A stretch of 64,000 nt of DNA, taken from positions 62,001 through 126,000 of the forward strand of contig JAHLTZ010000047.1 in assembly GCA_025786725.1 (NCBI GenBank). The letters run 5' to 3'. The stretch is from Syncephalis fuscata S228 (Eukaryota > Fungi > Zoopagomycota). The position numbers and the translations under genes are program-made. Each line of letters begins with the position of its first letter. Position 1 is the stretch's first letter. Below the pieces are notes generated by a model. That model made no database searches. It was not told the DNA's origin and saw only the letters and a list, made by a program, of their open reading frames with translations. This document shows, piece by piece, positions 14,712 through 62,789 of the stretch.

Positions 14712-15360
14712 TGTACTTTGACACCACATTTGGAGTCTCCAAAGCAAAATCTGCTCCAACTCAAGTCAATTGTAACAAAATGGCCGTAGGATAGCCACTG
14801 TTACTGCTGTTATGCATGACAAAACACAAGTATAGCGCTTTTATTTGATTACTTGGAATTTACGAGGCCGATCATTATTGTTGTTGGCCATGTATAGAAA
14901 GATTAATCGAATATTAATAGAAGCCATGTGATCGCAATTCCATATCGTTTTGCAGTTGTTATTGTTGTTACTACGTACAGTGTGGTTTCTTGCGTCTGAA
15001 TGGTCTTTTCTATTCTCCAATCTTCTGCTGTTGCATTTTGGGCACATTTGTGCTGTAAGATACTCGCCTATGATGACAAAAAGGTGGAACAACTAGCATT
15101 TCTAATGTTCACTATTTTCTTGAGCATTCTTAATATCAACTTGGTAGATGCAGATTATTTGCCAACCATTGATGGAGCAAATCTACCTCCACCATATGCA
15201 ATAATGATAGGTTGAGTGTCTTCACCAGGAAGATCTTGCGATGACAGTTGTACCAGAAGATACGGCATGCCGTTGAGGTTGCTTGAACAGGTGTTGACGT
15301 AAATAAGAGAAGTAAAGACTAGGAATTGAATAATGCTCTTTATTAATGTTCAAATACGCA
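14712..15360 (-). mobile_element. Degenerate Fanzor (eukaryotic TnpB-like) 3' half plus transposon end
   Basis: Across one stop and frameshifts it reads PIIIAYGGGRFAPSMVGK...VIIGEYLTAQMCPKC...CKTIWNCDHMASINI, matching the RuvC-II / Zn-ribbon / RuvC-III layout. The non-coding terminus ...GTCAAAGTACA is shared with the copy at 23541. Confidence 0.7.
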
Positions 15361-23540: not shown

Positions 23541-23786
23541 TGTACTTTGACTCCCACATCTGTCCCAAAGCACAATTTGTTCCAATCAGAGTTATGCCAT
23601 TATTATACGCAACATAGTTATATTACTTTCTATTAAAATATTATTAATAGACTGATTTAAATAAACAATGTAGCATACTATTTGATTACTTTGAAACATT
23701 TGAGGTTGATTATTATTGTTATTGGCTATGTGTAGAAAGATTGATTGAATATTAATAAAAGCCATTGATCGCGATTCCATATCGTT
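23541..23786 (-). mobile_element. Second, shorter Fanzor/TnpB transposon-end remnant
   Basis: Encodes TIWNRD..MAFINIQSIFLHIANNNNNQP, homologous to 14841-14950. It ends in the same terminus (plus strand TGTACTTTGAC..CCACAT..CCAAAGCA..TCCAA) with a different flank. Confidence 0.65.
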
Positions 23787-24298
23787 CCTCATTACTTCTG
23801 TTGCCTGTTTGTCATACTGCACATCAAATTGTTATGTATCTATTTCTTTTCTATCTTGTTTCTGTTTACTTGAACCACATTGTATATTATAATAATTATA
23901 TTTAATAATCGCAATTATTTTATTATTTTTATACTTGTAGACCATTTCAACAAAAATATCTAACAATTCAGTGTAATAATGACGATGTATTTTACGGAAA
24001 TCAATTTAAAACAGGTATCACAATATTATTGATTGGCTTGTATGGTTTTACTTTTATTCATAATTTAAGTTTGTACTGCTTTCATCTGAATGCTATACTA
24101 TTATATCATTAGCTAATTTAATATTGAAGGAAATGATGCTATAATAATATAGATTGTCCATAAACATTACAATGTATGGTCAAAGTAGTTCATGTTACAT
24201 TAGCAAATGTACAAAGCGTATTGTAATAAAATATTTGATTATTATTATTATTTATGATATGCACGAAATAAATGCTATAAGTATTGTTAGTCTAATTT

Positions 24299-25658
24299 TT
24301 ATTGAATATTGGCTGCAAGCCGTTTAAATGTGCTCCATGGTCGTTTTACTATTTTCTTTATCTTTTCAGCTGTAGAAGACGTTAACATTTGAATTGGAAT
24401 TAAGCAGCCGGAGCTATTACTGCTATTTAACGCCACCATAAACTTGAGAAGTTTAAGTAGTTTTTTTGCTGCAACTGTATCAGATTGCGTTGGAAGTATT
24501 GGTAATTTAAATTGATACTGTTGATAATTGTTGATAAACCTTGCTTTCAATTGCTCTAGCCTTTCCAGTTCATTTGGGGTTATTTGCGGTGATATGTTTG
24601 CTGTTATTTGGAATATCTCCAATAAAGTTTTAAATTGATTTATATTACTGCCATGAAAATAACGCGGAAAGACTCCAGTAATAGATCTAAATATCTTTTT
24701 TGACAGACTTGTATTATCATCATTGCATAGATTATAAGCTGGTGTTTTATCCAAATTTTGTGGTGGCACCAATTTTTTAGTGACTAAAACATTATTTTGG
24801 ACCAATTGTCCAGAAACATCATAGTCGATGATTGTCACTTTTACGTCTTTTGAATTCGGTATTTGCCAAACCATGATGTCTACTCAAAATAGTTAGATAA
24901 CCATACAAACACACGTATCAACGTACTTTTCCCCTCCAAGTCGTTATGAATTAAGTTGGCATAGCGTAAATACATAGTACCTAGTTATTGTTAGTAAATA
25001 TATAAAATTTATAACATTACTACATACCTTGAGCCACTTGATAAAACACTTGTGGAAGAAATGTAGCCTTTTCTGCCCATGATTTTGCATCGATGAAGTT
25101 ATCCAACTCAATACCATAAGCAAACGAGTATATATAACAAACATCATTCTTAGAACTACCAGATGGTTCTGGTATTTTAAAGCTATGCAATGGTTGTTGG
25201 ATATAATCCTTGCCTTTTGCTATACTGTTTTTGATTAGATCTTTTACTGCTTTTAAAATCTATTTTCTGTGTCAGTCAATTTTTAATAACAAGCCAAATT
25301 CTTACATTAAATGCTACATCCTCTTCGTACGCTATGTCATTCCTTATACATTTTAGAAATCTACGCTGATTATTCCATACGACATCGCCAACGCTTACTT
25401 CATGTGATCCACCAATCCATTTGATTGAGGCAAATCCATGACCTTTAAGTGTATCGTCATTTTTAAAATAAATATACCCAGGACTTTCAAAACCAAGCTT
25501 AGCTATTATGGATATTAATTTTACTAAAAACCACAGATTTAACACAAATATGCACACTTACCACCAATCCTTGCACCAATAGCATTTGCCAGTGATACAC
25601 TGCAAAGCGCTATTAAAGCACAAGTTGATATAACGTTGCACAAAGTAAAACTAGTCAT
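24299..25658 (-). CDS. Secreted atypical protein-kinase-fold protein (5 exons), copy 1
   Basis: Signal peptide MTSFTLCNVISTCALIALCSVSLANA; RFLKC (Lys kept); IHNDLEGKN; VTIIDYD. Reading frame is open after splicing. Confidence 0.8.
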
Positions 25659-26288
25659 GTCAAAACAGCTATTCTATAAGGTAAAGATTAAAAAAATTGT
25701 GATTGTGCGTTTGCGGAAAATAGGGAATAACTATTATATGAGAAACGCCATAATACGATGCTTATTTATATATATATGTGTAACTGAGATTTAAAACAAT
25801 TGAAAATTTTACAAGTATTGCTAAAAATAAATATTGAACTATAGAAATGGAATTCTTTTGCTGTCTTTGAGTATGTTAATACCATTTACAAAAATTGTAA
25901 AACGTGGGCTGATCAAAAGAGATGAAACGTCAATACTTATTATAGCATACTACTTGGATGATCTATACCATATAGAATTGGCGTATTTTTACAAAACAAC
26001 TTAACATCTACTATCAAATGAACACATAGAGACACTTTACTAAACAGTACAAGCTATTGAACCAATTAAACAAACAATGACATCCTGCGTTAATGATTGG
26101 TGCTCAACCATCCCCAAAAAAGATTTACAACTTTACCATGAGAGCTTATCATACTTGAATCACATCATCGCTATCCGATAAACACGCCTTTTCTCGCTCT
26201 TATCGTGTCATATAGGTTAACGGGCCGTAGATATATCGCTACTAAAGTTTTCTTTTGTATTTATTCATTATAACAATTAGTTGCCACG

Positions 26289-29200
26289 ATGCAAGCGAGT
26301 TTCTTCTCGTCGACGTTTAGCGACAATCTAAGCGGCTCGTCGTCCACACGCAGTCCCGACTTTGTTAAACGTCGGCTTGACCATTACTATCGCGCCATCA
26401 ATGCGATTGTTCTTTCACGCCAGAATGCCTGCAGCGGCTTGTTACCGGCCTCGGTAGCTGTTACAACGCACGGCGATTATCGCGATGCCTGGGTACGTGA
26501 CAATGTCTACTCGATCCTTTGTGTATTCGGTCTGGCTCTGGCCTATCGTCGATTGGACGACGATGACGGACGTGCCTACGAGCTCGAGCATTCGTGCGTT
26601 AAACTAATGCGCGGTCTACTTACAAGTATGATGCGACAAGCAAGCAAAGTGGAGCAATTTAAGCAAACACAAGCACTGGAACACTCGCTCCACGCCAAAT
26701 ACAGTACGACAACGGGCGAGCCAGTTGTAGGCGACTTTGAATGGGGTCATCTTCAGTTGGATGCGACTAGTATATTTTTATTAATGCTTGCGCAAATGAC
26801 GGCAGCTGGCATGCAAATCATCTATACGAGTGATGAAGTTGACTTTGTTCAAAATCTTGTGTTCTATATTGAACGTGCTTATCGGTAAGTAAATGGACAA
26901 ATATTATTTATTTTGTATCTGTAAGTGATGTTAATTATTGTATCTAGCACGCCAGATTACGGTATTTGGGAACGTGGTAATAAAATCAATCATGGACAGC
27001 CTGAATTAAATTCGTCATCCATTGGCATGGTTGTGGCGGCTTTACAAGCAATTAATGGTATTAATCTTTTTGGTCCTCGAGGTGGTCCATCAACGGTGAG
27101 GTATTAATATAAACTAAATGTTTATTTTACTTATTAAATGAATAGGTCATTTACGCACTACCCGATGAAATTACCCGCAACACCACCGTATTGCACTCTG
27201 CACTTCCACGCGAATCAAACTCCAAAGAAATTGACGCTGCTCTTCTTTCGATTATCAGCTATCCTGCTTTTGCCGTCTCTGATAAAGCATTGGTGGAGCG
27301 CACACGAAATGATATTATTAAAAAATTGGGCGGTAAATATGGCTGTAAACGCTTTTTACGCGATGGCCATCAAACGACCGTTGAAGGTAAATAGAGGGTA
27401 TATTGGTTTATAGTACTGTGCAGTTAACCATTTATTGCCACCTTAATAGACACTTCCCGTCTGCATTATGAACCACACGAGCTTGAAGTGTTTAAAGACA
27501 TTGAATCAGAATGGCCTTTGTTTTTTACTTATCTTATATTGGATGGTATATTTACAGGAAATGATGTTCAAGCAGAAGAGTTTGCAGAGGCGCTAGAGCC
27601 GCTAATCATTTCATCAGGCCAATTAAACCAGTTGGGATTGAAGCTGGAAGGTATTAACGTTGATACACAGCGTGTTCCTAGCGATGCCACCGGTTCTACG
27701 CCGCCTATTACACCACGAGCACCGCGTGATGATATTCCATTGATTCCTGAACTGTATTTTGTGGCTAGAGATCGGGTTGATGCCGAAAAGGCCAATCCTC
27801 ATTCACAGCCACGTATGCCAAATGATAACGTGCCATTGGTATGGGCCAATTCCTTATATTTCCTTAGCCAATTGCTACGTGAAAATCTACTATCGCCAGC
27901 GGAGGTTGATCCATTGGGACGTCGTTTACTTCCCAAGTTCAATAAAGCATCAAATACAGTGGTGCAAATTGTGCTATTGTCGGAGGATGTGCAGCTACAG
28001 TCGAAGCTAGCTGTCTATGGCCTCGAGACGCAGACCGTTGATGAAGTACAGCCAGTTACTATTGGATCACACAAGGCACTGCTTGAAGTCTATAGCACCT
28101 TGGGCATGAATCGTAAGCTAGGCTTATCTGGTCGACCTCGACGGTACGTGCAATAATTGCCTTTACGGCTAAATATTAATATAAAACATATATACTAATT
28201 ATAATGGGTAATCACATTTGTAAATAGACCGGTTGGTTGTCTAAGTACATCTAGACTTTATCGCGTACAAGGCCAATTATACGCATTTACACCGCATTTC
28301 CTTGATCGAGAAACCTTCTATATGACAAGCGACAACGAGTACTTAATGGCACTATTTGAACAAGAACTAGCGTTTATCCGCGACAATTGGACTTGTTCTG
28401 GCCGTCCAACACTAGTTGTTATGTTAACACATGCCATGATGGACAGTATTACAGGTGGCCGGCCGTCGACTCATTCGGCAAATTCAAACCAGACCGCCAT
28501 GAATCTATCACGTCCATCTATTAGGTATCGTGGCCGCAATATACTTAACTTTATGATGAATCTACGAGCCGGGCAATGTAATGGTGTTCGAGTCCGTTTG
28601 GGTCGACTATCGGAAATGGTCCGTACCAGCTATATTGAAAGCCTCGACTTTCTAGTCAACAAGAATGATGTTGATTGGTATGGTATTCTACGAGGCAGTG
28701 GCCGATTTGGACACTCTCCACGAGATATTCTATCAGCATCGGCTCGTAAATCTCGACAACATCGCCGTTCATCAACACGTAGCCGATCTCGATCTCGATT
28801 GGCATCACCGGTACTGAAACCGGAAAAGTATCTTAAAGACGAAACGAAATCCATTGGCATAGTGGGGACAATAGTGGCATCGCCACCACCATCTGCTACA
28901 TTACCTTCACTCTCGCTGGATATGTCGCTTTTATCCAACCATCATACACCAATCGATAAAGAAGGAAAGGAGATAGAAAGTAAGGCGAGCATAAATACTA
29001 GTAGTAGTAACGCTGCTATACCAGAACCATTGTCATTGGAACGAACGGGTACCGATCTATCTGAAGCATTATCTGATGATACAGTATTGGATATTGATAC
29101 ACTATCTCTTACCTTGGGCGACCCAAGCAGTGTACCACAAGCCATTGAATATCTAGTCAAATCAGCCAACTATACGATCAGATTGGTAAGAACTAATCGC

Positions 29201-31242
29201 TTAATTACTTAATATTTACAGTTATAATACCAATGCTAATTAAATATTAATTAGATTTATTACACTATTTACACTCATGTGTGGGATCAGCCTATCAGAT
29301 AGATGCGTTATCTTGTACAGTGGAACAATTGCTAGAGGAAGTGTATCGTAAGGCACTTGGCTTAAGAATGTGGCATGTTGTTCGTCAATCAGCTGGTTTA
29401 TTACGTAAAGTTGTCAATTCACTGTCTATTAATTTGACCGATCTACTTATTCGTCAAAAGCAAGTAACATTTTCATCTGGCGATGAAGAAGTATTTATTC
29501 GGTCTCCATTACCACCAAATGCATTAACAGAATTGCTGTATAAACATTGGTAAGTCATTAATAAACCATTTATCTTAATAACTCATTACTATTACACTAT
29601 TAGCCAAGATGATGCTCGTGAAGGGCCATTGGTACAGGAACTACTTACTTATATGGGCAGTTTCATTCGAGGTAGCCCACAGATGTTTGATGGTATTATG
29701 CGCTTGCGTACCCATTATATTATTGTCGCGTTACGAGAGGACATATCTCGTACTAAAGGATGTGATGAAGAGACAGCTGTAGAATTGTTAATGCAGGTAA
29801 GTAATAGTAATATTTACAGTAATATCGATAGTAACTAATAATGTTTATCATATTTATTGCAATAATAGATGAGTCCTAATGATCTACAACGGCTATTGGC
29901 CACTGTATTGAGTGGACCTAGCTTATGTAGTCCATTCAAAGAGCCAAGCGACAGTCCAAAAATGGATGATGAAAAAGAAAGCAAAAAACAAAGCAATAGT
30001 AACCACAAGAACATTGAACATCTACAGACACAACGACTTGTACGCGATCTATCACGTAGTTCTTCAAGCGTAGTTGCAGTATCTGTTCAATCTGCCGGAT
30101 TTGATGCCGGTGATTTTACTCATATTACCGTCAATAATGTGGAATATAGCATGAATCTACGTGGATTGAATGTTGTTGTTATTGATCGTCTTGGTGAGGT
30201 GACCGAGGTGGCCAGCTTTGATACACATCTTTCAAGTGAAGAATCAGATGCATTCTCCAAGTTGGTCGATCAATTGGAGAATGGATCAGTTATAGTGGTG
30301 GCCATTAAGGATGAAAGCTCATGGCACTTGTCATTGTCGGCCATACAAGCTTGTCGTTCACTTGGCAGTAAATCGATAGATCAGGTTCAGTTCCGTGACT
30401 CTTGGTGCTTCATTGGTACTAAAGGTAAGCCTGATATTGCATGTCAATTATCTAGCCAATTAATTATACTTGTATTAGGCAATACGTCATTGGCTGTTGA
30501 GTCATATCGACCAGCCAAAGATGGCCCAACTGAACTGCTGACCAAGCGTATTGACTTTTCTCGGCCACCAGTTGATCAGTCGGCTACTAGCAGCTGCAAT
30601 AGCCTCTCTTCTCTTGCACAGCTATCTCAGCACTATCCAAGCCCATCTGGCGGTAGATGGCTTCATCGACGCAAGAATGACGGTTCATTGAATCGAGTGC
30701 CTGAAGGCTTTTATCCACGCGTGTGGCGTATTCTTAGCCAGTCAGCTGGCTTGCTTATACGTGAAGAACGTCTTCCAAGAGATCCAATTGTATCGGAAAT
30801 GACGCCAGAGGAATTCAATTTTGCTATTGAAGTTGAATCGTTCCTTGACAATCTGATTGATCCGGCCGAGCGACAAATTGCCGTCGAGTGCTTAATGGTT
30901 ATATTCGACATGAGCAGTGAGACTGAAGAGACAGACATGAAAACACCATGCGATCCGGGTCATTCACCCCTATTAGACTTGTCGCGTGATATTGATTTGG
31001 TGAAGATTATTGACCATGCAGTTGCTCAGTATCGCGAACAGCATTTATCAACTCTCCCGGCAGAGACCGCCGAGACCGAACAAAAGATGGCCGAACAAAA
31101 GGAGCAGCCAAGTGAAGATAAAATAGGAGAAGAGCAGCTTCGTTTACTTTCGTATCAATACTTTTTCGATTTACCATTTGATCAACAAAATGGCACGGCT
31201 ACTTTTCTACGTGAAAGTGCACGACAATTGCTTCTATCCTAG
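26289..31242 (+). CDS. Phosphorylase b kinase regulatory subunit alpha/beta-like (GH15-like fold) with an inserted ILEI/PANDER-like domain
   Basis: [66 protein letters not shown]; about 7 introns; apparent 1-nt deletion near 29169. Confidence 0.88.
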
Positions 31243-31583: not shown

Positions 31584-33994
31584 TTATTTTCCTACTTTAA
31601 ATAAATTGGATAATGCAGTCAATATTAGAAACTTATGGACGACAATTGATAAGTTATTCGAATAACAGTACTTACCTTCTGTTATAATTATTTATTAGTT
31701 CCAATATTAATAAATGAACTTTATTAACACTGCCATACTCTTACTTATTATCATCCATCAAAGCCTATAGAGATAAGTCAATTGAAGATCATGAAGATAA
31801 TTAGTAATAATAGTAGTTTGGAGTAGCTATTTAGCACTTACTGACTAGTTATGTTAACAATTAGGCAGGTAAATAAATATAATTAATTTTGTATATTAAT
31901 CATTTAAAGTAAACTTACTAGCTAATGATATTATTTTGACAGATATATACATAAAAATATCACAATTAGTGTCTTTCTAATGCGTATTCAAATTTATTAC
32001 TTACTAGCTGTTGTTATTGATTTAAAAATAGTATTCATCAAAATATTAGATAGCTGCATATTACTCTGATTGCCTTTAATTTCCACTTACAATCTAATGA
32101 TAGATCGTGTAAATACAGTGTACAGTAATACCGTTAATATGTGTTTGTTTCTTTAGTTATGAATTCAAACATACCTTTTACCGATTTCAATAAACATGCC
32201 ATACAATCAATAAATGATTTAAATTAGCAAAATATTATAATGCATAATAAACATGTCGAATAGTATAACGTGGCCAACTATACATTCTAGTCACCAACTT
32301 ACCATTTGCTAACAGGTTAAAAAGTCAATTTTAGTAAACAATATAATGCAAAGGATTTTAAACGCAATCTGTGTCTGCACTTACTTATCACTAAAGTCAT
32401 AATTTATACAATAAAATATTAGCTATCGCAAATAGTCTAAATACAATCTAATTCGACCCACCGCCTATTAACATTAGTTAAAAACTATTACGTTAGCAAT
32501 ATGATACAATGCATATTTTCAAGTAGTACAGAAATTGCACAAGGTATAATCTTACATCCAACTGTGGTATTAATAAACCAGATTAAATATAATAAAGTAT
32601 TAATTATTATCAATTAGCTGAACATATGCTTTAGCTTACGAAATTCTATTAGCATTATTTTGTTAAATGCAGCATCAAATCGAAATATATTAGTAATCTA
32701 GGATTTATAGTGATCTATAAACTTACTCATATCTATTGAAATTGGATTCAGAATACATTATTAATGTTTTATTATGCTAATGATAATAGAAAATTACCGT
32801 CAACTATTTTAATAAACAAATGATTTAGATAATATAATGGTTAGTTTATATTCTAAATTAAAAATATTATGATTACTTACGAACTTCTATTAGTTTTAAT
32901 AATGCAGCATAGTTTGTTAAACCTATTGGAAACTTAAGTTTTATTCAACTTACTATCTATAAATACGGTTAATCAATCAAATTAAAATTGAGTTAATACG
33001 CTAATGACAATTTACAACTAAAACTCCAAACCTTAAGCTTACTTTTTTCTAATAATTGGTATTTATCAGTTATGTATAATAGCAGTAAGCGGCAGTCTCT
33101 TTTTAATTGCTTAAATCATAACCTACCAGACGCTATTTTTACCATATAGCAAACATTGATAGTCACAGCAATCGGTAGTTAGTAGTTGAATACTTATAAA
33201 TTATTGTAATTTACCCGGCACTATGCGTGTTTTTAGTACAATTAAAGCGCCATGTAATTAGTTATTATCCAATTAACAAAGTTGTAACTTACAAGATTCT
33301 ATCATCATTTAGGCATTGATATTGGTATGTAAAACAATGTTAGTTATGGTATAAACACTGATACCATAAATTACCGGAAACTATCAATGATAATAATTTA
33401 TAAATACGCAGTTAGAATCTTCAGATAATTGTTACATATTACAACTTACTTAATGCTATTAATATCAATTTGGAAAATATAGAGCATCAATATAAAGCTA
33501 GTTTATGAATTAATCATTTAGATTCTAACTTACCAGAACCTATTTCAGCAATTTGATGAATATTTAATATAAAATTTAACATTAACTTACGTAGAGCTAT
33601 CGATAGAAATTGAGAATGTTAGATAATAGCTAAATATAAACATTTATAATGTAACATACATGAACCTAATAAACAAGTTAGCGAACTAAACAACAATAAA
33701 GCATAAATAAATGTTAAACGTCCGATTACAACTTACATTTTGCTGTATAGACGTGTATCAATTAAATATCAATAAACTAGTATATTAGATGTTATACAGC
33801 TGCTTAACACTGTGTCTTACGATCATCTATTTGTGTTATTTTATTATAAATAATAGCAAGAAGTTAATAGTTTACTAAAGATAATTTTTGTTGCAACATA
33901 CCGCGGCGAACAATCAATGGTTGGCGTTAACGTCAATAACACTTGTTAGACACGCAACAACGGTCGTGCAAAGAATCGCCGTAGTAAGTCTCAT
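31584..33994 (-). CDS. Micro-exon gene encoding a small secreted protein (~29 exons, 25 of them 3 or 6 nt)
   Basis: Exon 1 (33994-33902) encodes MRLTTAILCTTVVACLTSVIDVNA-(x)PLIVRR-G; it needs +1 nt near 33921, otherwise TGA. Twenty consecutive YAG|3-or-6 nt|GT exons then splice to DDPKCSSLRSALISESLPASEKNKVLDDMKFLGCVITN with no stop. The 3' exons are less certain. Confidence 0.85.
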
Positions 33995-35227
33995 GGTTGC
34001 GTTGGCTCAGTTCAGTAAAACAAAAATGTTGTGTTAAAATGGAAAGTGAAAGTATGTACCTTTCATCTAGCGGTCTACGCACTTGTGCGCTATTTAAGTC
34101 TGTAGTCTGGCCTGTTTGACGCACAATAAACTAATTATAGATACCAAGTCTATGCATCCGTATGTGGTATTAGTCCACGTGCATACTATTTTCATCATAG
34201 CGCTTATGTGTCGAGTGTAAAACAACATTTTTTTATTGACCAAAGCGCTGTAACGCCTTTGGTAGCAGCGACAACAAAGGCGTATGCAGTCATTTATAGC
34301 AAAAAATAGATTGATTCATGGCGTTGATACAAGCAGCATCTGCATTGCATGCCTTTGGCCTTGTGCTTTTCATGCAGATACAAAGGTCTAGAATGCTTTT
34401 GAAAGCTTGTTTGAATATAGCATTACGCTATTCCAGTACACCTGTTAGTTATTAGCTGTACGCATACAATTACAAAATCAATTGCTTGACTAACACTATA
34501 GTATACCATAACATAATATATAATAGTGTGGGGTAGAATGGGAATGATATAAGTGGATATAGGATGTATGCATACTGGATAACAAATCTATGATGATGAG
34601 TATTTGATGATTGATGTCACTCACTACTTATTATCGTGTTTAATAAGAAGAATATCACCAAATTTAGTCATTTGATTCTTGAATTATATTAAATAGTTAA
34701 TAAAGCCAATTTATTTAATACATAAAACTAAATACATATTTAAAGACCAGTATCTAGTATTGATGCTAGTTATTGTAATGAATTAATAATACATACTTGC
34801 TAAGTTTGTTACGCTTGCTGTCTTTAATTTTTGGAAAATAAGAAGCTGGCACTTTTTTATCTTGGAAGAAAGGGCGCGCTTAGCTGTTTCCTGCTCTTAC
34901 TAAAAGCACTTTGAGTTTGCATGACATGGTTTACCTAAATAGTATTTTGCAAACATTGGGTTTTTATCTTTTTAATCAGTCCACGTTTTACAATTTTTGT
35001 AAATGGTATCAGCACATTCTAAGCTAATAAAAAGTTTTCCATTTCTATAATTTAATAACTATTTTTAGCAATACCTGTAAATTTTCAAATTTATCAGCTT
35101 TTAGCTATATAAATATATAAAATAAAAATGGCGCATTCTATTCTCTCTTTGTAACAACTATTTTTTTACTTTCACAAATACACAAATAGGTTTTATTTGC
35201 AATTTATTTTATAAATACTGGTCCAAT

Positions 35228-36558
35228 ATGACTAGCTTTACTTTGTGCAACGTTATATCAACTTGTGCTTTAATAGCGCTTTGCAGTGTATCACTGGTAA
35301 ATGCTATTTACTCAAAAATTGGTGGTAAGTGTGCATATTTGTGTTAAATCTGTGGTTTTTAGTAAAATTAATATCCATAATAGCTAAGCTTGGTTTTGAA
35401 AGTCCTGGGTATATTTATTTTAAAAATGAAGATGCACTTAAAGGTCATGGATTTGCCTCAATCAAATGGATTGGTGGATCACATGAAGTAAGCGTTGGCG
35501 ATGTCGTATGGAATAATCAGCGTAGATTTCTAAAATGTATAAAGGACAGCATGCTGTACCGCGAAGATGAAGCATTTAATGTAAGAACCTGGCTTGTTAT
35601 TAAAAAATTGACTCACCAAGAAATAGGTATTAAAAGAAGTAGAAGACAAAAATTTAATTCAAGACGACATGGCGAAAGGCAAGGCGTATGTTCAACAGCC
35701 GATACATAAATTTGAAGTACCAAAAGCATATAATAATCGTAAAAACGATGTTTGTTATATCTACTCATTTGCTGAGGGTGCTGATTTGAACGACTTCATC
35801 AATACAAAATCATGGGCAGAAAAGGCTACATTTCTTCCACAAGTGTTTTATCAAGTGGCTCAAGGTATGTAGTAATGTTATAAATTTTATATTTTACCAA
35901 CAGTAACTAGGTACTATGTATTTACGCTATGCCAACTTAATTCATAACGACTTGGAGGGGAAAAGTACGTTGATACATGTGTTTGTATGGTTATCTAACT
36001 ATTTTGAGTAGACATCATGGTTTGGCAAATACCGAATTCAAAAGACGTAAAAGTGACAATCATCGACTATGATGTTTCTGGACAATTGGTCCAAAATAAT
36101 GTTTTAGTCACTAAAAAATTGGTGCCACCACAAAATTTGGATAAAACACCAGCTTATAACTTATGCAATCAAGAAGATATAATTTTGTCCCGAACAATAT
36201 TCAGATCTATTACTGGAGTTTCACCGTATCAATTTACGGGCAATAAAGCGAATATATATAGAACTTGTTGGAGATTTTCCGATTAACAGCGCAAATATCA
36301 CCACAAACAACATCGGATAAACTTGAAAAACTAGAACAAATGAAAGCAAATTTTATTAAGCATTATCAATATCCACAATATGGACTGCCAATACTTCCAA
36401 CGCAATCTGACGCAACAGCAGCAAAAAAACTATTAGGACTTCTTGAATTTATGATGGAGCTAAACATGGGCAATAACTCTGACTGTTTAATCCAATTTAA
36501 ATGATGACGCCTACCTATACAGCTGAAAGAAATAAAGCAAATAATAAAACAAACGTAG
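35228..36558 (+). CDS. Secreted atypical kinase-fold protein, copy 2 (inverted duplicate of 24299-25658); 3' end disrupted
   Basis: Near-identical leader, intron 1 and catalytic region (IHNDLEGKN, IIDYD). Frameshifts at ~36264 and ~36492, and TAG at 36556 where copy 1 has Trp. Confidence 0.75.
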
Positions 36559-37079
36559 AACACATTTAAACAATTTACAGCTAATATTTAGTAAAAAGTA
36601 AACTAGTAGTGCTTATAATATTTCTTTTGTGTATTAGATAATAATAATGATCAAATATCTTGGTACAATAAGTACTGCAAATAATACATTAAATACATAT
36701 CTTTATTTTTACGAATCTATATACTGCCATGTTACACATCAACTATTCAAATTATTTACTTTACTGTTATTACTAAATTACTATTTTATAGCGGCATTGT
36801 AACAGACACATATTATGGATAATATAGCTATGCATTAAACTCATTATTAATTTTAGTCATACTGTAGCAGATGATAAACTCGTTTATTCAAATACTAATA
36901 ATAAAATACTATATAATCATACTCAAATAGCACATATTAATAAAGCAAGTTTATATAATGCAATAGTAAATAAGCAATATTATTTATAGATTTCATTTAC
37001 TTGCAGAATTGTGATTTAATTGTATAAAACAGAAATCATTCCTAATAGTCGCTTTTCATTGGTAGATAGATATTGCTAT

Positions 37080-48666: not shown

Positions 48667-49590
48667 CATTAAACTATAGATTGTATGATTATTAATAATT
48701 AAATAAAGATAGCTTAATTTTTAAATGCTAAAATATAAATGCTACTTTCAATGCAATAACACTCAAACTATCCATCTCGACAATAATATTGGCATTGAAT
48801 TAATTTAGTTCGTTATTGTTTGTTTGGTGGTCAAATGACTAACATTTAATAACAGCCAATCTATTAAACATGATGATGAATGGTGAATGACATTAAAGTT
48901 TAAAATACCCATTATCATAGATTTATTATCCAGTATGCATATATCCATCATTTAATTATTTCATTTTCATTGTATTTTTATTTTATTATCTATTATTTTA
49001 CGCATATTTAGTCTTGTTTTATTCAAAACTGCTATTTGTTTGGCGCTAACTCTTTTATTTATATTCTTGATTTATTCACTCACTCATCATAATATACATT
49101 ATAATCAATATTTATTCGAATTATAGCATTATACTAGCTTACAGTTACATCTTAAGTATGAACAAAGCCATACAATAGTACACAGACTATATAAAGTCAT
49201 GTTTTAATGATCGTATTAAACGGTATAGCCAGTAATGGCCAATATAGAAACGATGAAACAACAAGGTGACGTGGCAAATCATCATCCACACAATGGCACA
49301 CTCAGCCTATCAACGAAGATTTAATAAACAATTAAATTGGTAAATACTCAATGCCGCCATCATCACACCCACCGCTTTTCGTACTTTACACCTTACCGCG
49401 GTTCCCATTCTCTTTCCATCTCTTTCTTCATACTATTACTGTCATTACCATTGTTAAGATTGGTTTGCTGCCAGTACCTACCCCCCTCTTATCTCCCTTC
49501 GTGTTTGTTTATTCCTTGAACTCGGCGCACGTGTGTATCTTTTGGTAGGGCAGCGCCAGCCTTGTTACGCGCTTTCCTCTATTTGACACG

Positions 49591-52500: not shown

Positions 52501-55392
52501 TCATTGAAGTCTACGTTCAAAAGGTCAATCCGGCTCGTTCTCCCGCTGTTATTGGCGCACTATTGGATGTTGATTGCGATGAGAATATGATTCGTAGTCT
52601 CTTAATGTCAATTCAAGTACCAGTTCCCGTTGATGAGTTGACACATGAAGTCGAACAACGCAATCGACTCAAGTTAATCTTGCCGTATCTTGAAGTTCGT
52701 ATTCGTGAAGGTAGCCAAGAATCAAGTGTTTATAATGCTTTGGCAAAGATCTATATCGATAGCAACAATAATCCGGAACATTTCCTTAAAGATAATCAGG
52801 TATGGAGTATTATATTAATAACTAGTATTTGTAACTTATTCTGGCTATTACTATTATAGTTTTATGATTCACGTATTGTTGGTAAATATTGCGAAAAACG
52901 TGATCCATATTTAGCTTATGTGGCCTATGAACGTGGTCAGTGTGATATGGAACTGATTAATGTCACAAATGAAAACTCCATGTTTAAACACCAAGCAAAA
53001 TATCTTGTAAAACGACGTGAACCTGAATTATGGGCTCAAGTACTGGACACGTCGAATCCATTCCGTCGTGCAGTCATCGATCAAGTAGTATCGGCAGCAT
53101 TGCCTGATTCACAAGATCCAGAAGATGTTTCAAATACAGTCAAGGCATTTATGGCTGCAAATCTACCTCATGAACTTATTGAATTGCTGGACAAGATCAT
53201 TATGGAAAACTCGGCCTTTAGCGATAATCGCAGTTTACAAAACTTGCTTATCCTTACAGCAATCAAGTCGGACAAGACGCGTGTCATGGATTATATTACA
53301 CGCTTGGACAATTACGATGCACCAGACGTTGCTGGATTGGCCGTTGGCTCTGGCCTATTTGAAGAGTCGTTTGCCATTTATCGCAAGCATAACCAGCATG
53401 CCAGTGCTATTAGTGTATTGCTAGACAATCTCGAAGATCTTGATCGTGCACTTGAATACGCTGAACGCTGCGATGAAGCTGAAGTGTGGAGTAAATTGGG
53501 TCAGGCCCAACTCAATGCCAACAAAGTTGTTGAGGCAATTGAGTCATATGTACGTGCCGATGATCCTAGCAACTATCAACAAGTAATTCAAGCAGCTGAT
53601 CGAGCTCAAATCTCTGAAGAGCTTATTCGCTATCTGTTAATGGCACCAAGAAGTTGAGGGAAGCAGCCATTGATGGAGAACTTTTATTTGCCTATGCTAA
53701 AACTAATCGACTAGCGGATACGGAAGAGTTTTTGAGTGGACATAATCTTGCTAAGGTAAATAATATATGTATTACAATATGTGTATATTAATACTAATTA
53801 ATTGGCGCTGTTTTTAGATACAAGAGGTTGGTGAGCGCTGCTTTGAAAACGGCATGTACGAGCCGGCCAAACTACTATTTGCCAACATCTCCAACTGGTC
53901 CCGTCTCGCTTCTACCCTTGTATTTTTGGGCGAGTATCAGGCTGCGGTCGATGCTGCACGTAAAGCAAATGGCACCAAAGTATGGCGCGAAGTCAATGCG
54001 GCCTGCATTGAAACGCGTGAATTCCGTCTTGCACAGATTTGTGGTCTACACTTGGTTGTGCACGCCGATGAATTGCACGAACTTATTCAGACGTATGAAA
54101 AGCAAGGATTTGTTGATCAGCTTATTGAGCTATTGGAAGCTGGCCTTGGCTTGGAACGTGCACATATGGGCATGTTTACTGAGCTATCCATTCTTTACGC
54201 AAAATACAAGCAAGAAAAGATTATGGAGCATTTGAAACTGTACAGCTCGCGTATCAATATTCCAAAGGTTATTAGAGCGTGTGAGGACGCGCACCTATGG
54301 GCCGAGCTTGTTTTCCTCTACGTACACTACGATGAGTATGATAATGCTGCACTTACAATGATGCGTCATTCAGTCGATGCTTGGGACCATGCTCGCTTCA
54401 AGGATGTTATTATCAAGGTGTCCAATCTTGATTTATACTACAAAGCGCTACGTTTCTACCTCGAGGAACAGCCGATGCTTATCAACGATCTATTGACGGT
54501 ATTAACACCACGTATTGATCATACACGTGTGGTTAAACTGTTGGAGAAGTCCGACAACATTCCATTGCTTAAACCATACTTGGTTTCAGTTCAATCTAGC
54601 AATAATCAAGCTGTAAATTCAGCCTATAATGAGCTATTGATTGAAGAAGAAGACTATAAATTGCTGCGCGACTCGATTGATCATTTCGACAACTTTGACA
54701 ACATTGAATTGGCTCAAAGACTTGAAACGCACGAACTACTTGAGTTCCGTCGTATTGCCGCTCATCTTTTTAAGGTAGCTAAACAACACTGGTATATCGA
54801 TGAATAGCAAAGCTAATTATGTAATATATAAATAGAAAAATAAGCGCTGGAAGCAATCCATCGAGCTATCAAAGCTTGACAGTCTTTTCAAGGATGCGAT
54901 TCAAACGGCTGCCGAATCAAAAGACACTGAAGTGGCCGAAGAACTTATTCGCTACTTTGTCGATACCGATAATCGTGAATGTTTTGTAGCTGCACTTTAT
55001 GTTTGCTACGAACAAATGCGTCCAGATGTAGTAATGGAACTGGCGTGGCGCAACGGCCTTACCGACTTTGCCATGCCATTTATGATTCAAACAATGCGCG
55101 AATACATGTCTAAGGTATATATATTGCATGGAATATGATCGAGAATAGCGAATACTAACACGATAATGGCCAATAGGTGGATACACTGGAGAAGCAGAAT
55201 GCTGAACGACAAGCTAAGGAAACAACGAAGGAGAAGCAGCCAGATGGTGGCCCAATGATTCGTCCAGGTGGTGGCATGGGACCAGGCGGGCCGTTGATGA
55301 TTACCTCGGGCATTACTGGCGTTGCACCGCCAAATAGCAATCACATGGGCTCACCTGGATTTGGTGGCGCTGGTTATGGTGCGCCGTTTTAA
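49591..55392 (+). CDS. CHC1: Clathrin heavy chain
   Basis: [63 protein letters not shown]; about 12 introns; a 1-nt deletion near 53647 breaks MARKK. Confidence 0.97.
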
Positions 55393-57595: not shown

Positions 57596-57647
57596 GTTTT
57601 GTTTGATAGAGTCTATATTTGTTTGATAAGCGTAGTATAGTGTTAGA
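57596..57647. repeat. Left arm of a 52-bp inverted repeat (partner 60505-60556)
   Basis: Reverse complement matches 60505-60556 at 48/52 positions. Confidence 0.8.
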
Positions 57648-58036
57648 TATTGGCTGGAAACAGCACGAACAGCAAGCTATTCTTTAAAATTAGATAAATT
57701 AACAGATTTTGTTTGACATTGAGACAATAAATATTCTTTTCTTTGAACATCGGGATACTTTGCTTTCAGTTTCAATTCGATTCTGCGATACTTCTTGTAC
57801 CCAATATCAAAATGCCTTTAATTTAAAGTATATCTGTAGGTTATTGGCTTTTGAATGGTGTTGAAGTTATAGTGTGTTTATAGGCAAAATAACTTTATAA
57901 AAACACAACTATTTAACCATTGAATTACATTAAATAGTTATCAAGTTGTATAATAATTTATTAGCTAATTTATTTGTAAAAGCAATAATGTTAATAAAAT
58001 AGTGAAATAATGTTAAAAAGTATATATCTAAGCTGT

Positions 58037-59878: not shown

Positions 59879-60504
59879 CGTACAACTAATTTTTGTATTG
59901 AAGAAGATGTATAATTTAATTATATAAAAAGTGCCGATAAAAAGCAAATAAAAACGAGACGTATATAAGATAGGAATATTTGAATAAGTACCTGGTAGTT
60001 ACTTTTAGACTCAAATGATATGGTTCTATAAAAGAATATTGGCATGTTTTAAATACCATTTTAGATTGTCAAACAGGAAACTTAGAACGTGTGTTTAAAA
60101 TAGTACTAATTGTAGAACGATAGCTCTATATCTATATATATTACTAGTAATTTGATTTTTATTTAAATTAGTGATTTTAATAATTACCATGCAATATTAT
60201 ATCTTCTTGATTAACTACTACAATTGCATATAACTTCTTATGGTGCTAACTGGTCATGATATTACACATCAGCATACATAGTTTGACAGCTGTTTTATAG
60301 GTTGAATAGCTTAAAACTAAAATATATTTGGCTATACATAAAAATGGCACGCAACAATTTTTGTGTTTGTTAAATAGATCCAAGCATAATAAAACATAAT
60401 AATATAGATTAAGCAAATGGTTTCAACAATTTCAAATGCTATTATAATAAAATTAATGCATGTTTCAATGTATAAACATAAATAACAATTTTATTCAGTC
60501 AATC

Positions 60505-60556
60505 TCTAACAATATACTAGGCTTATCAAACAAATACAGACTCTATCAAATAAAAC
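60505..60556. repeat. Right arm of the 52-bp inverted repeat
   Basis: See 57596-57647. Confidence 0.8.
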
Positions 60557-61075: not shown

Positions 61076-62789
61076 GATGATATTGCAATCAATAGGAAAA
61101 AACGTAGAATGAACTGCGTGAGTTGTTTGAAATAAAATGGATAAAAACGATGATTAGACAGAGAGTAGAGCATGACGATGACAGCTATTTAAAAGGGATT
61201 TCTTTCTTTAAAAAATGATGTTAATTGCCATTTTTTGATTAACTAAAATTACGGAAACGTGCAAAATTCTAAATAAATCGTATTACTATATTTGGTAACA
61301 GTGCCCTTGAATTCACTTTTAAAGCAGATCGTCATTGTTTTCGATGTAAATAGCTCTTTATTCCATCCTCCCAGTTGTTGATACTTTAGCACACTAGACA
61401 AATGGCGTGTTTACTTTCACTACATGGGTAAAATAATATTCTTTGTTTATAGCGCCGTAAAGTCTATATTTTATTGTGCGCTATGTAGCGTTATAAAGGT
61501 GTGGTATGTTTTGGCGTTTGCTGCTTTAGTTTAATATTATCTAGCGTGGATCATGAGCGCTTTATCGTGCGTTGCTACTTTGTCTTTGGGGGCTACAGCC
61601 TTCAACTTAACCCTAATCTGACCGTTTAGTTGCAGTATTCAATGAACAGTACTCGGCCTATCCGTAGTCCCAGGGCTATTCTAATCTAAAGGCTTTGTTG
61701 CTATCAAAAAAATTAACTTGTAGTCGTTGTCTATCGGTCGTATCGGGCAAATTACGTGCTTTGGGACCGCGGCTGCTTGTTAGTTTTGCGGATAGACAGC
61801 ATGGTGTTTATGGAGCTGGCGGTACGTCAGTGGAGTACAGGACGAAGAACTTTATTGGATATCACATTTAAACGCGTGTACTGTTGTGTTTGCTATCGGG
61901 TAAAACCGTTAGCAAACACAACAATGACTGGTGTTTCTGCGGTGCTTATTGCTCTGTTTAGCGTGCAGAGTTTTTGACCAGTCGTAAAACTATTACTGAA
62001 AGACACCTTGACAAGGTAGTTTGCGATGAGCTGCTTGATGTACGCTTCATCCCACACTAGTTACATATTTACTAAAGCGGAGGTGTGGGGCAAGCGAGAT
62101 GTATTGCAATATTGCAATGCAATCCTAGTTGATGACAAATCTTCAATTAGCTATAAGATTTGGATGGAACCAAAGGATTCATTGGCTTGGTAGTTATGAC
62201 GGATGGGACATGGTCCTTGACTATAATGAATATCTACACCACTGGTAGATATTAGGAACTCGTATTCCGCGCATTTGGTCATTTAATAGCCATAGTCACG
62301 GGGGGAAGCTTCACCACTGTCATTGACTTACCAGCAATGTGTCGTCTTATAGCTATTGATAATTGATAAACAGGACCACATACAGTACTTTAATACATCT
62401 GTACCAGAACAAATTCACATCCTTTCTAACTGACACCGACCAAAGAGACATCTATTTAATAAATGACTTTTATTCTTTTAATACATTTACTATTATACTG
62501 AATATATGTTTTATAATAATGAGTAGTTTTGGTGGTAAAATGACTTTTATTCTTAATGCATTTATTCATTTACTATCAATCTGTTCTATGATGTACTGAC
62601 ATGTTGGGTAGATTGACTTTTATTATTTACACTTCATTTATTAATCAATTAAACTCGGCTGTTTATAAATATTGACTGACAGGCTCACATCTCACAATCT
62701 ACGTCACTACATTTCTCTTTCTCTTTCTTTACACTTGACAGCATATATCCATTGCATATATTTGTACACTCCATATATACCATCTAAAT

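Follow-up and report, generated by a model that had tools for sequence, protein, structure and literature searches.

An unannotated, conserved Syncephalis gene in which consecutive 3- and 6-nt exons encode a small secreted peptide

Closest described systems

Schistosome micro-exon genes (MEGs) combine very small symmetric exons, a signal peptide and fast protein evolution (10.1101/2023.06.21.545858; PMC4350168; PMC4015677). Single microexons are known in large fungal proteins, as with the 20-nt switch exon of Trichoderma Xlr2 and the cases in S. pombe, and according to a 2024 paper (PMC11121469) no functional microexon had previously been reported from filamentous fungi. A literature search returned no report in fungi of a gene such as the one described below, and none linking Syncephalis with microexons.

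The window analysed here comprises 64,000 nt (positions 62,001 to 126,000 of contig JAHLTZ010000047.1, assembly GCA_025786725.1) from Syncephalis fuscata, a zoopagalean fungus of a genus of mycoparasites (PMC10386755). The species is not pathogenic to humans, animals or crops. Its annotation has no gene between a phosphorylase kinase gene ending at 31242 and a kinase-like gene starting at 35228. The micro-exon array found in this interval is a genuine, conserved and very unusual Syncephalis gene for a small secreted peptide, and we document its architecture, synteny, conservation and divergence.

Like schistosome MEGs, the gene has a signal peptide, a coding region made mostly of very small symmetric exons, a parasite as its bearer and a protein that appears to evolve fast, and it too was missed by automatic annotation (10.1101/2023.06.21.545858; PMC4350168; PMC4015677). 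Its exons are however smaller (3-6 nt, against mostly 15 nt), its introns far shorter (51-91 nt, against 0.1-5 kb) and its bearer a fungus, so it is a convergent look-alike that works like a MEG at most, and not a member of that class. It strings at least 20 micro-exons in a row and is apparently present in one copy in the DNA scanned. MEGs are restricted to the Schistosomatidae; skipping has been demonstrated for MEGs (PMC4015677) and is hypothetical in the Syncephalis gene. With the Trichoderma Xlr2 and S. pombe microexons it shares a very small exon that lies between short introns and escapes gene callers, but those are single exons, whereas here the whole mature peptide is made of micro-exons. 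It further resembles the small secreted, cysteine-containing fungal peptides (Kex2-type) in its signal peptide, its propeptide ending in a dibasic pair, its conserved cysteines, its restriction to one lineage and its divergence. Genes of such peptides normally have few introns, in contrast to the many-exon gene found here, whose first exon matches no family.

Array structure and conservation

Acceptor-donor sites. On the minus strand between 31600 and 33900, 26 YAG acceptors have a consensus donor no more than 12 nt downstream; dinucleotide shuffles (n=500) give 2.7 such sites on average and 8 at most. Eighteen of these sites are 6 nt long, seven are 3 nt long and one is a spurious 2-nt call; in the rest of the window, acceptor-donor sites favour no particular length. 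Exons 2-21 (33826-32303) form a run of 20 consecutive 3- or 6-nt exons, all with YAG acceptors and GT donors, whose introns measure 51-91 nt and which adjoin in series without a gap (Table 1). Most of the coding region thus lies in very small exons, the whole core coming from these 20 with one or two residues from each, and a pre-mRNA of ~2.3 kb serves a core coding sequence of 114 nt. The core frame and all 40 core splice sites are intact in S. fuscata.

Table 1. Features of the micro-exon gene in the S. fuscata window, with corresponding S. plumigaleata positions (sequence L002)
Feature	Position	Strand	Exon starts	Remark
Exon 1 (start codon, signal peptide and short propeptide with terminal dibasic pair)	33902-33994	-		donor 33901
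Stretch with one-base frame break in exon 1	33917-33929	-		signal peptide and propeptide motif in different frames
Micro-exons 2-12 (eleven, 6 nt)	33043-33826	-	33826, 33742, 33665, 33596, 33539, 33455, 33380, 33298, 33220, 33132, 33048	colinear with L002 14139-15002
Micro-exon 13 (3 nt)	32954-32956	-		3-nt exon of same rank at L002 15084-15086
Micro-exons 14-18 (five, 6 nt)	32556-32886	-	32886, 32803, 32732, 32645, 32561	five 6-nt exons in L002 15158-15455
Micro-exon 19 (3 nt)	32462-32464	-		identical in both species; completes split second-Cys codon
Micro-exons 20 and 21	32390-32385, 32308-32303	-		correspond to single 12-nt exon L002 15595-15606
209-nt stretch with orphan donor 32174, no visible acceptor	32094-32302	-		phase-1 frame open for 16 codons before donor
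Tail micro-exons 22-25 (four, 3 nt)	31842-32093	-	32093, 32007, 31921, 31844	phase not fixed
Exon 26 (20 nt, asymmetric)	31745-31764	-		phase 1 ends in three tandem stops; phase 0 open
Exon 27 (3 nt)	31676-31678	-		followed by further intron (donor 31675)

Orthologous loci. The syntenic locus of S. plumigaleata (L002) was fetched through the neighbouring Barentsz-like gene. The same array lies there between the same neighbours, with 18 colinear phase-1 micro-exons (2-19), and the 3-nt exons hold ranks 13 and 19 in both species. The first exon of S. plumigaleata (L002 13964-14048, 85 nt) is intact and ends in phase 1, as does that of S. pseudoplumigaleata (L003 3884-3971, 88 nt), where the contig reaches only a little further, through an intron of 73 nt and an exon 2 of 6 nt. 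The original prediction, made from the S. fuscata letters, placed 20 micro-exons between phase-1 introns; the intact first exons of the two other species (85 and 88 nt) bear out this phase, so that core exons 2-21 are symmetric (multiples of three in the same phase). The further claim that every micro-exon is a multiple of three holds for exons 2-21 and breaks down in the tail, which contains a 20-nt exon (31764-31745).

Exon number is nearly unchanged between S. fuscata and S. plumigaleata. Exons 20 and 21 match one 12-nt S. plumigaleata exon, so one intron has been gained or lost. Exon 10 of S. plumigaleata has a weak donor, its longer readings containing stops, and is followed by a double-length intron that may hide a damaged extra exon; the array also has an unused strong donor at 14787 (L002 14768-14936). 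Exon 12 (L002 14997-15008) also has a weak donor, with an in-frame choice of 6 or 12 nt; because exons 10 and 12 rest on such donors, the number of exons may vary somewhat, as may the spacing of the cysteines (28 or 30). The S. plumigaleata array also contains two GC donors, and several donors in its tail are without clear acceptors (L002 15607-16200). The public S. plumigaleata model KAI8057187.1 (68 aa) is mostly wrong, yet three of its introns are among those inferred here and two of its exons are 6-nt exons read in the frame given here, which may be taken as an independent sign that those introns were recognised.

Divergence. Only 6 of the 34 core residues (18%) are identical between S. 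fuscata and S. plumigaleata, both cysteines included and with them the Val-Ile that follows Cys, as compared with 38-95% identity for the neighbouring proteins; all codon positions are saturated between the two species, and therefore dN/dS cannot be computed. Exon by exon, residue similarity in register nevertheless exceeds that of residue shuffles (p=0.0003) and exon DNA identity exceeds that of exon permutations (p=0.012). Introns cannot be aligned above background, orthologous pairs resembling each other no more than non-orthologous pairs do. The array stands at a syntenic site and has kept its exon layout, and therefore represents a conserved gene; its product is a secreted peptide that appears to evolve fast and probably contains a disulfide bond.

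The contrast between exons and introns also bears on a reading in which the exons are spacers and the product lies in the introns, as in a small-RNA host transcript, or in a splicing delay. Small-RNA host genes do have tiny exons between many short introns, but here the conservation is in the exons and not the introns, the signal peptide is conserved and the frame is open. There is no Rfam match and no intron carries both a C and a D box, and Rfam, C/D-box and intron comparisons together found no conserved structured RNA in the introns; we consider a non-coding role very improbable.

Extent of the search. No second array turned up in a scan of ~79 kb from S. fuscata and 25 kb from S. plumigaleata, and a phosphorylase-kinase search found no further Syncephalis locus. 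A three-micro-exon DNA pattern, which detects both Syncephalis loci, gave at least 120 metagenome and 13 prokaryote matches (four contigs labelled human gut metagenome, L016, L042, L046 and L049, were left out), and those examined were tandem repeats or repeat-like, with no true array among them.

At the donors of the S. fuscata array (31675-33901, minus strand), base +7 is mostly T and is A in 3 of 27, whereas 12 of 16 ordinary introns have A there (Fisher 4e-5, a comparison made post hoc). The T bias, absent from the S. plumigaleata array, could mean that these introns have a common origin or that extended pairing with U1 is weaker.

The two ends of the gene

Tail. The 209-nt stretch downstream of exon 21 (32302-32094) may hide a longer exon. 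Because this intron contains an orphan donor, tail exons 22-27 have no settled phase, and exon 27 would belong either to the 3′ untranslated region or to an alternative end. An AG immediately precedes the orphan donor at 32174. The site might be a recursive splice site of zero length, or it might close an exon that lacks an acceptor; two further cysteines would lie in the open stretch preceding it.

First exon. The original prediction began the array at 33826 (its span being 31676-33826), which leaves out the start of the gene at 33994. Exon 1 of S. fuscata is 93 nt long and in this assembly has an in-frame stop at codon 27. Aligned first exons of the three species, judged by inspection, all begin with a hydrophobic N-terminal leader, and the S. 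fuscata exon contains the propeptide motif common to both orthologues, read in a frame other than that of the signal peptide. The dibasic pair ending the propeptide is a putative Kex2-type site.

The one-base break, the stop at codon 27 with no other usable start, the orphan donor at 32174 and the lack of a gene call are what would be expected if the gene were real in the genus and the S. fuscata copy a recent pseudogene, which we consider unlikely. Single-base frameshifts also occur in the clathrin heavy chain gene (53645-53660, plus strand) and in a PfkB motif (~20435, minus strand), where they are most likely assembly errors, and the S. plumigaleata assembly (L002) has six single-base losses within conserved coding sequence. 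Since such losses commonly break coding DNA in these assemblies, the exon 1 break is probably an assembly error as well, and a pseudogene is further disfavoured by the intact core frame with 40 of 40 core splice sites.

A Pfam search with exon 1 alone gave nothing significant, and a large database search with the 34-aa first open frame of exon 1 had the S. plumigaleata database model as its sole match; a word search with that model matched only itself. Because a signal peptide is a weak probe, this lack of exon 1 relatives does not amount to an absence of relatives of the mature peptide.

Exon skipping and the peptide product

Library or by-products. Our best reading, held with moderate confidence, is that the form with all exons is the main product and that in-frame skipped forms are by-products and not a selected library. 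We regard as possible but doubtful the alternative in which skipping is frequent and useful, so that a selected, combinatorial pool of secreted peptide variants serves host or self recognition at the host interface; this would make the gene a convergent equivalent of schistosome MEGs, evolved independently in a mycoparasitic fungus. In its favour, every core exon is symmetric and in phase 1 in two species, the peptide is secreted, very divergent and from a parasite, exons of 3-6 nt are intrinsically hard to recognise (PMC10250204) and MEG transcripts reach seven skip variants (PMC4015677).

The skip joins themselves speak against a selected library. It had been proposed that skipping any subset of micro-exons keeps the frame, and so it does, but 11 of the 190 possible joins in S. 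fuscata make a stop codon, as do 9 of 171 in S. plumigaleata, where one arises by a single skip that stops the frame. Stop-making joins have not been purged: we found no depletion against two null models (P 0.55-0.85). Both cysteine codons are split across introns in both species, the first between exons 3 and 4, so the cysteine pair depends on four specific exons and heavy skipping destroys it; at 50% skipping per exon, open products with two cysteines are computed to make up 13% in S. fuscata and 5% in S. plumigaleata. Nor are the donors weak, exact-consensus donors being found in 9 of 20 micro-exon introns and in 6 of 16 housekeeping introns (p=0.74; the latter set comprises 16 introns conserved between species, with one donor per acceptor chosen by eye). 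Exon gain and loss is also almost nil between species whose introns no longer align, and fungi whose introns are short seldom skip exons.

A low rate of skipping would have a different effect. At 2-5% per exon, 33-64% of transcripts are computed to be in-frame shorter forms, and 5% leaves 36% full-length. Recognition of both ends of a 3-6 nt exon at once is impossible, as argued for animal microexons (PMC10250204). Constitutive inclusion is nevertheless possible even for an exon of a single base (PMC4674806). Given exons too small for two-ended recognition and this computed yield, some in-frame skip variants of the peptide are likely to occur.

Proposed mechanism. If the all-exon form is the main product, ~26 short introns would be removed one after another, since U1 and U2 cannot flank a 3-6 nt exon simultaneously, a constraint established in animal microexons and assumed to apply here. 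The main mRNA, if expressed as we infer, would carry all exons; the peptide would enter the secretory path and be cut after the dibasic site, and its two conserved cysteines would form one disulfide. The sequence between them appears to change fast, which would fit a host-contact or self-recognition peptide of a mycoparasite, a peptide acting on contact with the host fungus or among cells of Syncephalis itself. The array may have originated by repeated copying of an exon-plus-intron unit, the copies having since diverged, and its uniform phase most likely records this; we found no sequence trace of such copying, the introns being without clear mutual similarity. After copying, the frame itself would keep exon lengths at multiples of three, and the uniform phase would make skipping errors harmless. 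On the other side, uniform phase over 20 exons would be unnecessary for one constitutive product, and by analogy schistosome MEGs, the closest known system, do skip exons (PMC4015677).

The residues named in the original prediction and its cysteines at mature positions 5 and 34 were reproduced. The two amphipathic helices it proposed gained no support: helical hydrophobic moments of both segments are no greater than those of shuffles (p 0.24-0.94), so the hairpin is a guess. The two conserved cysteines of a hairpin effector are present, and the label 'effector' is one suggested solely by secretion and lifestyle.

Significance. Even without skipping this is an extreme gene, with ~20 consecutive 3-6 nt exons, conserved between species, that encode a whole mature peptide. 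Secreted-protein genes of this kind are invisible to gene callers and protein searches (there is no call in S. fuscata and a garbled one in S. plumigaleata), and secretome counts of early-diverging fungi may therefore miss them. The gene offers a compact natural substrate for studying how a series of micro-exons is processed by the spliceosome. It is also a second case, independent of the first, in which to ask whether the layout of schistosome MEGs exists for making variants or is a tolerated product of history. Should the variant library prove true, a peptide would be diversified by splicing in a kingdom where exon skipping is considered rare.

Neighbouring genes and repeats. The kinase-like gene, which has a signal-peptide-like start, occurs as an inverted 1.7-kb duplicate (24219-25927 and 34962-36670, 82% identical), the two copies flanking the phosphorylase kinase gene and the micro-exon gene; S. 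plumigaleata has no kinase-like gene between the Barentsz-like gene and the micro-exon gene. The Barentsz-like gene is one 696-aa model in S. fuscata and two models in S. plumigaleata (L002 10001-13050), where an F-box gene is likewise cut, by a frameshift. The gene at 26289-31242 (plus strand) encodes a regulatory subunit of fungal phosphorylase kinase into which an ILEI domain is inserted, as it is in chytrid and mucoromycete relatives. Dispersed intergenic repeats of 60-145 nt pair 14842-14949 with 23679-23786, 34534-34675 with 48831-48974, and 57596-57656 with 60496-60556.
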